From contig NIVC01001565.1 in NCBI GenBank assembly GCA_002269645.1, forward strand, positions 67,384-131,383: 64,000 bases of DNA, read 5' to 3'. Within the stretch, counting starts at the first letter, position 1. The number at the start of each line of letters is the position of its first letter. Positions 21,940 to 33,076 of the stretch are shown here, piece after piece. The DNA is from Macrostomum lignano (taxonomy: Eukaryota). The translations under genes and the position numbers were made by a program. The notes below the pieces were generated by a model. That model worked only from the letters and a program-made list of their open reading frames with translations, was not told where the DNA came from and ran no database searches.

Positions 21940-23231
21940 TGCATGAATGTGAAATTATTACAGTAACAGACTACTAATTAGTAGACAGGTTAAATAATGT
22001 AAATACTCAGGTATTATCCTGATTTCTAATCCTAAGATTCGAATGAAAAATGATATTCCAATCCAGCCAGACTTCTAAACTTTTAGCCTATCTAACTTTC
22101 AAGCAGGCATCAAGCCATAAACTACATCTAATTTTTAGTATACACACACAGATATGATAGAGAAATTATTCATAGATTTTTAAAATATCAAAGCCACAGT
22201 TATCAAAATAAAAGCTATGAATACATTCTAACTAAGATGAATATACAATACTTACTTAAGGTACTTACTCGTATACTTATGATATTTAAAAATGAATAAT
22301 GAAAAGTTAAGCATAATAGTCATTAAAAATGTGCAGCCTGGATTATTATTTTAGCAAATGTTTTTTCTAACTGAAAAGAAAAAAGTTTTTATATGACACT
22401 TATAGCAGGATCCTATATGCAGAGTCTTGAAAAATACTATTTTAGGACTAAGAAATTGTGACAAATGTGAATTGACTAACTACATTAGACCAATTGTGTC
22501 AATGATATGAAAATATATTTCAATAAAAAGATTGATTACAACTTACATTGAAAACTCAGAATTTGATAAAATAGGGGATAGGGGACAGGGGATATAGGAA
22601 TAGGGGGCCAACTTAGAGATAGGATATTGTACCTAATACTAATAGCTAGCATAAATTTTAATACAATATTATATATTCTAGTTTTATCCCTAGGACCTAG
22701 AATAGAAAGGTTGCTTGTTTTTTTAGAGGTTGGATGAGTAGAAAATTTTGGTTAAGCATAAAATTTTGTGAAATTTTCCAAGTTGGGCATGATTGTGATT
22801 GTGAATGTGATTTTATATGTGCAAACATGTATTACAAGCTTGTAAGTTACAGTGTAAAAATAACAAAACAAGAAAATAAACCATTGTATATTAGATAATA
22901 GATACTTGGTAAATGCTGTCAAGTCAACAAATATAAAATATCATGATCATGCCCGACCCTTTTTGTTTTTTTTAAAAGTTAAAAATATTAATATTAATGA
23001 AATAGCTATAGTACAATCCTACAATTTTTAATTTTATTCTAAATTTAAAATTAAATGTCAAGTGAAAGAGAAATAAACTGATTTAATTAGCAGGTCTGCA
23101 GGTGCAAGCCCAAATGAAAGAAAAATCAGACATGCTTAGAGCTTATCTTAATATTTTGTTTATAAATATTATTCTGATTATTATCCAAAATAATTTTATT
23201 GTTTCCTATTGATACTTCAGCCTTTGCATTT

Positions 23232-24385
23232 AATGGCCTCTACCTCAAGTCTAAGTGATTTTAGAAAAGTCCAAGGAAGTGCCATGTGGGTATTTTTTCA
23301 AGAACTTAATGGTAGAATAACAATAATGTTGCTTATAAAACCTGTGCCAAGCATGTTCTATAGTACTTTGGCATAATGGAAAACATGAAGTGCCACTTGG
23401 AATCATAGCATCAAGATAAAGTTAAGGAACTAAAAATTATAGAATTTTTTTGTGAGCATGAAAAGAAAAGAAAAGGCAGTGATAATGGAGATCCACCATT
23501 AAAGTAGCCTAAAATCAGCACATGGTTTTTTTCAGAATAAGCAATGAGCTCTAGGCAGATTCCAATCTGCAATCTGTTGCTATTGACAATAGCATTGTTA
23601 AGTTTATTGCATTAGATTGCTAGCCATTTATTGTTATAGAAGGTAGTGGCTTTTGACAACTTCTATAAGCAATGGCTTTTTAGTATTGAATTTAATATAG
23701 CTGCTTTTACCATAATAAACTTGATGCCCTTTTTTCTAATAAAATTAATTCAAAGGTTTAGTTAGAGATTGCCAAATGTGACAAATTTGCTATAACTTCT
23801 GACTTATAGAGTGAGAGACCTTTAGCTTTCATGTCTTTCACATTTCATTTGATTACAGAGGAGTAGAGAACTTTGAGCAAAAGCAATGATTACTCTTAGT
23901 AAAGCCATTTGATAATGCTCACATTGGGCTCAACATCTTAGCATTGTTTTCTATAACATTGAGAGACTAAGAGATTGACCAAAAAAGAATCCATATCCTC
24001 CTACATGATGAAGCTAATAATATGATGCTAGCTAATCAACTGCTCAATGTGATATCAACTCATTGCACTATATATAAACTGCACTTAGTTATTAGCAAGT
24101 GTAGTCTCTTGCTAACATAGGCTTAAGAGCATTTGTAACAAAGCAAATAGTATTGATAGACATTTCCACTACTTGGTTATAGCATAATCCAATTTATCAA
24201 AGTTGCAAGAGCAGCTATAGCTATTTTTGCATAGCCTAATCATTGATATCAAGACTAATTTGAATTTAAGTGTGTGCTAGCTATCATAAATGTATGCTAG
24301 AAATTTTTGGTATATATAATGATAATGCTAAGTGGGGTTATACTAGTATAGCAATATTTTACCCACATTTATCTAACTGGCTTCC
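23232..24385 (+). pseudogene. Decayed hAT (Ac/ZBED1-like) transposase with N-terminal BED finger
   Basis: Manual translation through stops and frameshifts gives AMWVFF..[C]KTC..MKCHLES*H (BED finger), IVKFIALDC*PFIVIEGSGF*QLL*AM, ITSDL*SE (first catalytic D), LLHDEANNM (second D) and HCTIYKLHLVI (CxxH-like). Confidence 0.8.
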
Positions 24386-24389
24386 TGGC

Positions 24390-25841
24390 TAGGGGTCAGA
24401 CAAGATCTCAATCTTGATCTTGATTATCAAGATCTTAGCACTGATTATCAAAATCATCATCTTGGTTTTGAGATGTTAAAAAAAGTCAAGATTTGTAACA
24501 AAGTGACTATTAGTAACTACAATTTAGTTACTTTAGTTAGAATTATTATGTAATAATTGTTTTTCTTTCTATTATTATCATTATACATATATTAGCATTT
24601 TTAAATGTTTAAATATGTAGATAACATATTTAAGCATAAAAAATAACATATGAATATGAAAGCATATATAGCATACTAAATATTGTAGATAACAATAACA
24701 ATATTAGCATTGATAAATAGAATAGTATAAATAAAATAGGTTTATTAGTATTAGATGCTAATTAGGCTTGATCTTAAATCTTGATTAAATCTCAATTATC
24801 TTAAAAATATAGATCTTGACTCTTAAAGATCTCAAAAATATAATAATGTCTAACCCATTGGGCACTATTAATAAAAATCTTAAATTCTGTTAATAGCAAA
24901 AATGTAAGCATTAAAAGAAAAAAATCTTTATTTATAAATTCTTAATTTTGTTAAGGTAACTTAAAGTCTATTAAAGTTAATATATTAACAATTATCAATT
25001 GATAATTGATAATCAATTGATAATTGATATTGGCAATTGATCATTGACAATTAATAATTAATAATCAATTGATAGTTGTCAATGATAATTGATAATTATT
25101 AACAATTGTTAATCTAAAAAATATTATAAAAACTATAAACATCTTTGATATTGCACTATATTTTTTATCTTTTTAGCAATAACACAAAGGTTATCTAAGC
25201 AGTTACAACAAGCTCAAAAGTAATAAATAATAATTAAAAAAGCTTATATATATAATACTTACTAAAAGTAAGTAAATAGTAAAAGAAGTTATTTATTTAT
25301 TTGAAACTTAAAAGCTAATTAATTAATATTAATAATATGAATTTAAGGATGTTTCAGTAATGTCACTTAGTAGGCATAGCAAAAATCTATGAAAGATCAG
25401 GAAAGAAGTAAATAAATTAAAGCAATTGATATTCACACACAAGCAATAAAGCTTATTATTTTAATTCATTATTAAAGTTCATTACTTAAGAAGTTGTTAC
25501 AATTACAATTGCATGATCATTGTCATAAAGAAATTAATTAGGCATTTAGATAAATTCAAATATATTTGTAATTTTATAACTTCTTTATTAGACTTGTATT
25601 TTTGTTTTTTTGCATCTTTGGTCATTGACATTACCATTAATGCTAATAATAAATCTATTGTTAACTCAAGTACTCAACTCACAAAATTATTGGGCCTAGG
25701 TCTAACACAAATTTGTTTATCTATTAGGGGGCCTAGTTAAAAATATCTTATTGGCAATCTATTAATCAATTTTTATGAAAAAAATCTTAACACTTATTAA
25801 TGCTTATCAATGGACTGGTGCCCAACACTGTCTAACCCCTA
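24390..25841. mobile_element. hAT-type non-autonomous element inserted in the decayed transposase, itself carrying a nested element (24857-25830)
   Basis: 8-bp TSD TTCCTGGC (24382-24389 and 25842-25849). TIRs TAGGGGTCAGAC / GTCTAACCCCTA. The nested insert duplicates TCTAACCC (24849-24856 and 25831-25838) and ends in GTGCCCAACACTG. Confidence 0.8.
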
Positions 25842-31420: not shown

Positions 31421-31539
31421 GAAGAACCAAACTATCAAATAAAGAACAAAAAATATATTTTTAAATGAAACCAGTTGCAGTCAATACCTCATATGCTAAT
31501 GAGCCCAATTATAACTCTCAGATTAATTTGGCAAATTGG

Positions 31540-32550
31540 TATATAAAATATTCAAAAAACAAAGTTTTTTAATGTTTTCAATGGGTGCTCTACTGAATTT
31601 TGGACTGTAAATCTAAATGCCTACCATGGTGGCTTAGTGTGCTTCTAAAAAATTCAAATGATTCTTTCAATTGGCACTTTACTTGAACTTTGAATTTTGG
31701 ACTCTGAGTCTGAATGCCTACCATGCAGGGGCTTAGTGTGCTTTTAAAAAATTCAAACAAAAAAAATTGATTTAGAAATAAGTCAAATATTTGAAAAACA
31801 GTTTTTTAATGATTTCAATGCTTAAATTTTGAATTTGAATGCCTCCTAATGATGGCTTAATGTGTTAATATTGTACTATATGCAAAAAAAATTTGTAGTA
31901 GAAAAGAAAAGGATTATAGCACTAGATGAAGAAAGGATTATTACATTTAATGTAATATGTGTTATTGCACTTATTAAAAAAGGATTATTGCATTAGCTTA
32001 GAGAGGGATTAGCTAACTAGATGAGAAAAGGATTGTTATCCTAGATAAAAAAGGGACTATTGCACCAGCTGAGATAAATTATTGCATTGGCTAAAAATGG
32101 ATTATTAAACTAGCTTAAAAAGTCAAAAAGAATTCTTGTACCAGATGGAAAAGGATTATTGCACTAGACAAGACATAGATTATTGTACTAGATAAAAAAT
32201 GGTTTCTTGCACTAGATAAAAAATGGTTTCTTGCACTAGCTAAAAAAGGAATTATTGCACTAGCTGAAGAAGTTGGTGCACTAGGTTGCTATTTGTGGGG
32301 TGCTTATTATTTGGAGGGTGCTTGTTATTGGGGGATGCTTGTTAAATGGGGGTTGTTTGTTATTGGGAGATACTTGCTCTTAGGAGATGCTTGCTCTGGG
32401 GAATTGCTGAGGTATCAAGGCTTAATAGGGGAATTTCTAAGATGTCAAGGCTTAATGGGGGAATTACTAAGATGTCAAGGCTTACTAGAAAAATTGTTAA
32501 GATGTCAAGGCTTACTGGGGAATTTCTCAAGTGTCAGGGGCAAATTAAAC
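31540..32550. repeat. Old degenerate tandem arrays (~100-120 bp, ~30 bp AAAAGGATTATTGCACTAG-type, and 30 bp GGGGAATT...GTCAAGGCTT)
   Basis: Repeating motifs are visible but heavily diverged. Confidence 0.65.
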
Positions 32551-33076
32551 TAGTTGAAGCACTATTGTATATTCTAAACAAATTTAATTTTACCATTTTT
32601 ACTTGTGATTGATACTTTTAAGCATATTTAATACAAATTCAATGCTAGATTTTTTCATTGAATTCCATATTGAATAGGCTTAAGAACTCAAGTTGAGTGA
32701 GGCTAAGTTTATTAGATTCTGGCATTAAACTGAGATGCAGTTAAAGCTAGCAAAGTCATTTTTATTAAGGCTTAATTGCATGTTTAATATGGCTACATGA
32801 CATTTAAGCAAAGTAATGTTTTAGTGAATCCTAGAAGTAATGGTTTGGCAAGTATTGTAAAATTTTGGTGAATCCAAAAAGTAATACTGATATTGATATA
32901 GAAGAAATATTGCAATTATTTTTTAACTCTAAAAATTCAAGCCAGATAGCAATGCCCTTTTCTGCCAATAGTAAGCCATTGTTAGACATTAAAAAGGCTG
33001 CTAGGCATTATAGGCTTCTATTTTGACTGTGAGCCCGCAATCGAACTCATGTCCCTTTCCCTTTGACAACCGCCAG

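Follow-up and report, generated by a model that had tools for sequence, protein, structure and literature searches.

What has removed nearly every CpG from the AT-rich DNA that lies beside two housekeeping genes of the flatworm Macrostomum lignano? The question is raised by a stretch of 64,000 nucleotides of contig NIVC01001565.1 (assembly GCA_002269645.1, positions 67,384 to 131,383 of the forward strand; the window, in whose numbering positions are given), where RPL8, on the minus strand, and DDX3, on the plus strand, form a head-to-head pair, and where the DNA from 21945 to 33030 (NIVC01001565.1 ~89328-100413; the block) is AT-rich and very poor in CpG. An earlier note on this DNA had proposed that the block is a domain of hypermutation on relics of transposable elements (TEs), marked by decay of CpA to TpA as in the repeat-induced point mutation (RIP) of fungi, which would be a novelty for an animal. 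The analysis described here leads to a different answer: the block is probably the product of ordinary AT-biased mutation, combined with a loss of CpG which is restricted to the block and of the type caused by 5-methylcytosine (5mC), rather than of a RIP-like attack on CpA. The parts of the locus are listed below, with CpG content given as the observed/expected ratio (o/e).

20145..21939, minus strand: coding region of RPL8 (uL2), exons 21939-21660, 21148-20930 and 20425-20145; left border of the block.
21945..26050, no strand: left half of the block, the spacer that precedes the ATG of RPL8; GC 0.274.
26051..27216, no strand: CpG-normal island between RPL8 and DDX3, presumed bidirectional promoter; GC 0.33.
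27217..27270, plus strand: DDX3 exon 1, MSYNNLSQYEIVQGLDQQ, identical in all three of three copies of the locus.
27271-33076, plus strand: DDX3 intron 1, all but the last 46 bp of which is the right half of the block.
27271..33030, no strand: right half of the block, the AT-rich part of DDX3 intron 1; GC 0.312.
31540..32545, no strand: degenerate tandem repeats, units of 17-30 bp and ~110 bp.
33031..33076, plus strand: acceptor-proximal GC-rich tail of DDX3 intron 1, 46 bp with 3 CpG; right border of the block.
33077-34347, 34608-34968 and 35718-36164, plus strand: DDX3 exons 2-4, separated by short introns; exon CpG o/e 0.91-1.20.

The left-half spacer may be a 5' intron of RPL8, an outron or intergenic DNA, while the promoter role of 26051-27216 is presumed from the arrangement of the two genes. 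Across 22-33 kb the GC content is 0.25-0.36, compared to 0.55-0.62 for the exons that flank it and to 0.59-0.72 in the exons of DDX3 and RPL8. No CpG occurs in 22955-25910, where mononucleotide shuffles contain 52 on average and 34 at the minimum (Poisson P=2e-23), and a sole CpG, at 30860, is found in 29437-33035 (shuffle mean 90, minimum 64; Poisson P=1e-37); the counts made by eye in the earlier note (none in ~22960-25905, one in 29460-33030) were therefore correct. So was its observation that CpG is kept outside the block: strand-symmetric dinucleotide odds ratios give the block a CpG o/e of 0.00-0.13, whereas the value is 0.91-1.20 in the exons, 0.95 in the NCKX intron at 50250-53010 and 0.73-0.90 in the region of a retroelement open reading frame (ORF). 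The residual CpGs of the block include those at 22040, 22270, 22954, 25911, 25924, 25952, 27960-28353, 28753, 29139-29436 and 30860.

The block had been described as a sharply bounded domain, and its edges, at the RPL8 ATG (21939/21945) and at ~33030, are indeed abrupt; it is not continuous, being interrupted by the promoter stretch with DDX3 exon 1 (26051-27270; 31 CpG, o/e 0.91, with o/e 0.08-0.13 on both sides) and by younger inserts that retain CpGs (27960-28353 and 29139-29436). The borders are sharp because the neighbouring sequences are held by selection: on one side exons with a GC content at third codon positions of ~0.77, on the other the acceptor-proximal segment 33031-33076, in which the three copies of the locus show 0 differences in 46 positions; the most likely acceptor of DDX3 exon 2 is 33076/33077, 46 bp past the edge of the block.

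The missing CpG is found again as TpG and CpA. The left half contains 6 CpG where 76 are expected, a deficit of 70.5 accompanied by a CpA+TpG excess of 68.2 and by TpA 20 below expectation; in the right half the figures are 18 and 140, with a deficit of 121.9, an excess of 109.1 and TpA 90 below expectation. Over the block CpA/TpG is over-represented, with o/e 1.16-1.20, while the promoter stretch and the NCKX intron at 50250-53240 have values of 0.96-0.99. Since the TpG/CpA excess is about as large as the CpG deficit, decay halts at TG/CA, like the ordinary decay of methylated CpG (5mCpG), and CpA is a stable end product. This stands against a repeat-targeted cytosine methyltransferase or deaminase that would have converted C to T at CpA as well as at CpG on TEs and so produced an AT- and TpA-rich block. 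The block is AT-rich, as had been claimed, while its TpA-richness holds in absolute counts only, the TpA o/e (0.85-0.96) being below 1 and no higher than in control introns.

The indices in use for the detection of RIP agree. RIP is called when the substrate index (CpA+TpG)/(ApC+GpT) lies below ~1.03 and the composite index above 0, and the usual threshold for TpA/ApT is 0.89; both halves of the block have a substrate index of 1.44 and a negative composite index (-0.48 left, -0.44 right), so that the CpA>TpA decay put forward as the novelty of the locus is not borne out. TpA/ApT, at ~1.0, exceeds its threshold and would favour a RIP-like process, but it is equally high in CpG-normal control introns and absurdly high in a simple repeat. 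When the indices were computed along the window, a check proposed in the earlier note, RIP-like values (TpA/ApT >100, substrate index 0.15-0.33) appeared only at two microsatellites, a 4.8-kb (TTAG)n array at 45463-50247 and a 0.75-kb (ACTA)n array at 57362-58116, the reverse complement of the former, both inside the NCKX gene; the extreme indices at 45-50 kb thus belong to the (TTAG)n repeat and are not RIP.

That the loss of CpG is an ongoing process, confined to the block, emerges from the comparison of paralogous copies. In the assembly the RPL8-DDX3 locus occurs in three copies, related as ((W,B),A): W, that of the window; copy B, on NIVC01002596.1 (L003, L005), which differs from W by ~1-2% in the block (0.2-2.2% in its left half); and copy A, on NIVC01001551.1 (L001, L004), at ~5% in the block (4.6-6.3% in the left half, 3.7-5.3% in the right half). 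A CpG was counted as changed when one copy has CpG and the other TpG or CpA.

W against B, changed/kept: block 14/19; promoter 0/28; other non-coding DNA 2/139; exons 1/245.
W against A, changed/kept: block 10/8; promoter 1/18; other non-coding DNA 5/136; exons 4/241.

Between W and B, 14 of the 33 CpGs of the block have turned over, as against 3 of 415 elsewhere (p=4e-15); between W and A the block has 10 changed and 8 kept, the remainder 10 changed and 395 kept (p=1.5e-10). The best control is the promoter stretch, which has the same neighbourhood, a similar AT-richness and a similar divergence, and from which the block differs in both comparisons (Fisher, p=4e-5 for W-B and p=1e-3 for W-A). 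DDX3 introns 2-3 conserve 19 of 19 CpGs with respect to copy A despite ~4% divergence. The part of the earlier proposal according to which a germline process acts on the non-coding block and spares the exons therefore stands, with the addition that the promoter is spared too. The creation of CpG in the block (6 apparent TpG>CpG changes) is of the same order as its loss (4), so that the near-zero CpG content looks like a steady state.

Between the copies the mutations can also be read by context. Alignments of three copies here take the place of alignments of each TE to its consensus; after masking of tandem repeats and of sites near indels, 6591 three-way aligned sites of the block were available, and 75 substitutions were polarised onto the W (35) and B (40) branches, which are balanced. 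The tandem repeats 31540-32545 were left out because their copies misalign (apparent W-B divergence 16%); a first spectrum with a 2.4-fold CpA preference and a 10-fold faster block had been due to these misaligned repeats, and both effects vanished after masking. Per ancestral site, C>T changes number 17/785 at CpA, 3/302 at CpC, 13/813 at CpT and 4/22 at CpG. At CpG the rate is 10.5 times that at non-CpG sites (95% confidence interval (CI) 2.2-24, p=7e-4), an estimate which is conservative since some of the CpG gains are probably mis-polarised parallel losses. At CpA the point estimate of 1.5 times CpC+CpT leans towards RIP but is not significant in the polarised block data (95% CI 0.74-3.1, p=0.29), and the ratio outside the block, 2.7 (not significant), is no smaller; likewise, when the 139 transitions that distinguish the block from copy A are taken without polarity, they fit a context-independent C>T process (chi-square p=0.15) despite a slight YpA excess (63 observed, 52.7 expected). 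The lesions were thus not mostly C>T at CpA, as had been read from the sequence; what is found, C>T about equal at CpA, CpC and CpT together with CpG decay, is the very pattern named in the earlier note as contrary to its proposal.

Nor is the block hypermutated: its divergence to copy A, 4-6% (~5% overall), is about that of the promoter (4.3%) and of DDX3 introns 2-3 (3.8-4.2%), which argues against any general hypermutation. The AT-richness can instead be referred to drift: GC>AT changes (42/1922) outweigh AT>GC changes (25/4667) in the block, giving an equilibrium GC of 0.20 where the block itself stands at 0.27-0.31, and the same bias is seen in other non-coding DNA (11/1806 vs 3/2301). 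M. lignano does possess a DNMT3 according to the literature, and DNMT3 enzymes can methylate CpA, which would provide a RIP-like process with an agent; RID-type enzymes are, to our knowledge, fungal. Taken with the enrichment of CpA/TpG, the stability of CpA as an end product and the lack of any second copy of the block relics (hAT-like, mariner, SINE-like and others) among the ~120 kb of M. lignano DNA compared, these data make a RIP-like origin of the block very improbable.

The sequence of events which would account for the block is the following. Old non-coding DNA under no constraint, made of mariner, hAT-like, foldback and other relics, would flank the shared RPL8/DDX3 promoter; a mutation bias from GC to AT, not peculiar to the block, would let it drift towards an equilibrium GC of ~0.2; a CpG-specific transition bias, acting inside the block only, would remove nearly all CpG and leave an equal excess of TpG/CpA; and the source of this bias would be the deamination of 5-methyl-CpG in the germline. 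From the 5mCpG-decay footprint it follows that the block would belong to a methylated compartment, with the promoter island and the exons unmethylated; we infer 5mC as the cause from this footprint together with the published retention of DNMT1 and DNMT3 and the low-level 5mC of M. lignano. Reviews that cite Wasik 2015 (PMC11292947, PMC9246332) state that M. lignano retains DNMT1 and DNMT3, unlike planarians and parasitic flatworms; the methyltransferases mentioned for the species in PMC9246332 and PMC3710501 are DNMT1, DNMT2 and DNMT3 only.

CpG might also be lost independently of methylation, either through faster deamination in AT-rich DNA, which melts easily, or because the relics were poor in CpG at the time of their insertion. 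Reviews that cite Wasik 2015 (PMC11292947, PMC10658182) report a low 5mC content in adult M. lignano, as this explanation would have it, and non-CpG C>T changes too are more frequent in the block (33/3800 per site) than in the GC-richer class of other non-coding DNA (5/3050). AT-richness alone does not fit, because the AT-rich promoter stretch is spared: with a GC content of 0.33 and 4.3% divergence from copy A it has a normal CpG content, and its CpGs have changed in 0 of 28 and 1 of 19 cases. Moreover, the excess rate at CpG (at least 10-fold) is far above the shift in the non-CpG rate, and turnover between the copies proves a process going on in situ and not an inheritance from CpG-poor TEs. 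An origin without methylation is accordingly rated as distinctly unlikely.

If 5mC is the agent, the block might be CpG-free simply as the long transcribed introns of two highly expressed housekeeping genes, by canonical transcription-coupled gene-body methylation. In both halves the DNA separates the promoter from the first large coding exon of such a gene, and an ohnologous RPL8, described below, has 3.6-4 kb of CpG-poor DNA at the corresponding position though the sequences are unalignable. Where genes carry body methylation, exons are as a rule marked no less strongly than introns, and the 5' end least of all; here the exons of both genes have a CpG o/e of 0.91-1.20 and stable CpGs (1/246 changed between W and B, 4/245 between W and A), and DDX3 introns 2-3 keep all their 19 CpGs at ~4% divergence. 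Third-position C/G of RPL8 compared between ohnologs has changed in 26% of CpG and 15% of non-CpG cases, a factor of only 1.8 (p=0.06). Although a mosaic gene-body pattern, part of which falls on TEs in some species, is the usual one in invertebrates (PMC11292947), its canonical form does not fit this locus, because exons and downstream introns are spared, and we regard it as unlikely.

The minisatellites of the RPL8 introns (20466-20812 in intron 2, 21220-21566 in intron 1) have units which vary between CpG and TpG, within arrays and between copies; for intron 2, the comparison of W with copy A gives 13 changed and 4 kept CpGs, a count in which misalignment of repeat units is possible. The CpG-unstable compartment may hence extend into the RPL8 introns, and such variants count in favour of gene-body methylation.

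The CpG instability might be directed to the block by a targeting of TE-derived or heterochromatic DNA or by a targeting of long, transcribed 5' introns or of outrons, or it might reflect a default state of CpG-poor DNA. A more specific version, to be taken as tentative, is that germline CpG methylation is dense on long TE-derived spacers and introns beside active promoters, and that exons, short introns and the promoter island are unmethylated; if this were true, a flatworm would depart from the canonical invertebrate pattern and show, locally, the vertebrate-like layout of an island in a methylated sea.

Several points weigh against the reading of block-restricted CpG loss through 5mC. Seventy-five polarised substitutions and 22 ancestral CpG positions are small numbers; parsimony mis-polarises hypermutable CpGs, and the six apparent TpG>CpG gains may in part be parallel losses; gene conversion between paralogs can occur; and the substitution-level analysis rests on one locus. 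The data leave room for a CpA effect of up to ~3-fold, which a non-CG activity of DNMT3 might produce. The CpG o/e of 0.9-1.2 in the exons of both housekeeping genes is not that of canonical invertebrate gene-body methylation, and methylation patterns in free-living flatworms are said to be unknown (PMC9246332).

The relics of which the block is composed, apart from the tandem repeats given above, are these.

23200..24330, plus strand: putative hAT-like transposase relic with many stops and frameshifts.
28441..29004, no strand: foldback (long inverted-repeat) element in DDX3 intron 1, arms 82-87% complementary.
29103..29461, minus strand: retroposon resembling a short interspersed nuclear element (SINE); GC 0.49, 6 CpG, o/e 0.28, target duplication of ~13 bp.
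30820..31257, minus strand: mariner transposase relic, C-terminal catalytic region with the motifs HSDNAPAH and HPPYSLDLAP, found by phmmer against PDB.

The domain had been said to consist of identifiable TE relics, and this is confirmed for mariner, which matches the Mos1 transposase (E=4e-6) and SETMAR (E=2e-4) and is the only relic whose identification is solid; the hAT identity of 23200-24330 is weak, the match to Pfam DBD_Tnp_Hermes (E=0.038) being below cut-off and that to the Hermes chain 2bw3_B having E=0.25. The minus-strand self-match of the foldback element is present also in copies A and B. The SINE-like retroposon, in which ARAGORN detected no tRNA-like head, is shared by the window and copy B, has an empty site in copy A and is younger than the rest of the block. 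Lesions at CpA/TpG catch the eye in such relics largely because of the genetic code: four of the five routes by which a single transition creates a stop are C>T at CpA or CpG, namely those from CAA, CAG, CGA and TGG>TAG (CCA>CTA on the opposite strand), whereas TGG>TGA, the remaining route, is C>T at CpC. In AT-rich DNA the stop-codon lesions of TE relics mislead, as do RIP indices.

Insertions of different age form a series in CpG content: the old sequence shared by the copies has a CpG o/e of ~0, the SINE-like insert, absent from copy A, 0.28, and the segments exclusive to copy A 0.46-1.0, with a GC content of 0.35-0.44. Depending on the CpG content at insertion, this order would fit a progressive decay of CpG thereafter.

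Other insertions were noted outside the block. A segment of 4.3 kb at 40165-44439 carries an ORF of 1300 amino acids (aa) for reverse transcriptase, RNaseH and integrase and is missing from both paralogous copies, its empty site lying inside an array of 16-bp repeats (L001 ~20150-20230); in copy B this ORF lies close by, on the other strand (L003 28462-32364). The two, with almost no flanking non-ORF sequence, look like independent and very recent insertions of an active element. Copy B alone also has an 11.6-kb insertion in DDX3 intron 3 (L003 12285-23881; GC 0.42, CpG o/e 0.90).

A more distant ohnolog of RPL8 allows a look beyond this locus. This ohnolog (L006-L008) is 96% identical in protein and does not align outside the exons; directly upstream of its ATG lie 3.6-4 kb of AT-rich, CpG-poor DNA, the same layout as in the locus studied here, and beyond this stretch there is a patch with a CpG o/e of 1.4-1.5 in L006 and CpG-normal DNA in L007 and L008. 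Turnover of CpG at the ohnolog, 2/20 vs 2/85, gives p=0.16, L007 and L008 being only 0.1-0.4% apart in the CpG-poor stretch and the non-coding DNA of L006 being unalignable. Downstream of the ohnologous RPL8, L006 (reverse-complemented, 4001-6500) has a second AT-rich stretch of 2.5 kb, with a GC content of 0.25-0.28 and nearly free of CpG, so that the locus studied here is not alone in having such a block.

As regards the genes themselves, the RPL8 protein of 259 aa, obtained by tblastn with human RPL8 and reconstruction of the splicing, clusters with BOX15_Mlig013601g1-3, and its exons have a GC content of 0.60-0.63 and a CpG o/e of 0.91-0.96. Spliced DDX3 encodes 710 aa and matches M. lignano BOX15_Mlig034455g1 with 99% identity across 97% of the length; at the DNA level, window 23095-46164 and the corresponding part of NIVC01001565.1 (L002) are 100% identical. 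The deposited DDX3 protein of copy B (P0121) begins in a wrong frame of exon 2 (window 33375-33728); it is an annotation artefact and not a pseudogene, because exon 2 of copy B differs from that of the window by an in-frame 6-bp indel only. The non-coding flanks downstream of RPL8 (17928-20144) and of DDX3 (36165-37000) are 0.5% and 1.6% from copy A, compared to 4-6% in introns and block, which points either to constraint (untranslated regions or a further gene) or to gene conversion among the copies. A protein search with the NCKX exons (window 44868-60103) returned 0 M. lignano proteins among 498 matches, so that GCA_002269645.1 seems to carry no annotation of this gene. Minisatellite arrays (units of 16-67 bp), mostly intronic and often GC-rich, fill much of the window; the GC-rich non-coding DNA, with which the AT-rich block contrasts, consists for the most part of these arrays.

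Minisatellite arrays, first half of the window: 193-1320, 2190-4802, 9511-10319, 11513-12317, 13324-14756, 15232-15796, 17372-17927, 20466-20812 and 21220-21566.
Minisatellite arrays, second half of the window: 38497-39560, 53252-55390, 55939-56780, 60838-62179 and 62754-64000.

The interest of the locus lies in what it offers to the study of flatworm epigenetics. Flatworms are usually cited as having lost DNA methylation, while M. lignano has kept DNMT1 and DNMT3; the locus provides a lead, from sequence only, to a sharply delimited CpG-unstable compartment which spares exons and promoter, and it supplies named coordinates and residual CpGs for a methylation readout. The mechanism proposed for the block is one already known. 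A RIP-like process in an animal would have been remarkable, but the data do not support it.

Among known systems, fungal RIP (in Neurospora and others) resembles the block in its C>T-dominated spectrum, in acting on what become TE relics and in the sharp-edged AT-rich DNA which results; it differs in that CpA/TpG is here enriched, with a substrate index of 1.44 and a negative composite index, in that C>T at CpA does not significantly exceed that at CpC/CpT, in that divergence is not elevated and in that no duplicated partner was seen in the DNA compared. The closest likeness is to the 5mCpG decay of vertebrate bulk DNA and of the methylated fraction of mosaic invertebrate genomes, with which the block shares the CpG deficit with matching TpG/CpA excess, CpG transitions at least 10 times as frequent as other C>T changes, and an adjacent, unmethylated-looking promoter island with normal and stable CpGs; DNMT1 and DNMT3, according to the literature, are likewise retained. 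Two differences may be mentioned: depletion in the block (o/e 0.0-0.13) is more complete than the vertebrate average of ~0.2, and the promoter island, unlike a vertebrate CpG island, is rich in AT (GC 0.33) rather than in GC. Compared to canonical invertebrate gene-body methylation, the exons of the same transcripts are here fully spared. With the CpG methylation targeted at TEs or non-genic DNA, described in some invertebrates (PMC11292947), the locus has in common that the unstable compartment is TE-derived non-coding DNA and not exons, whereas the CpGs of young TE inserts nearby are still retained, and the like layout of the ohnolog speaks equally for a positional rule. Finally, the stretch 26051-27270, with a CpG o/e of 0.91 amid values of 0.08-0.13, has the pattern of a CpG-island promoter in a methylated background.

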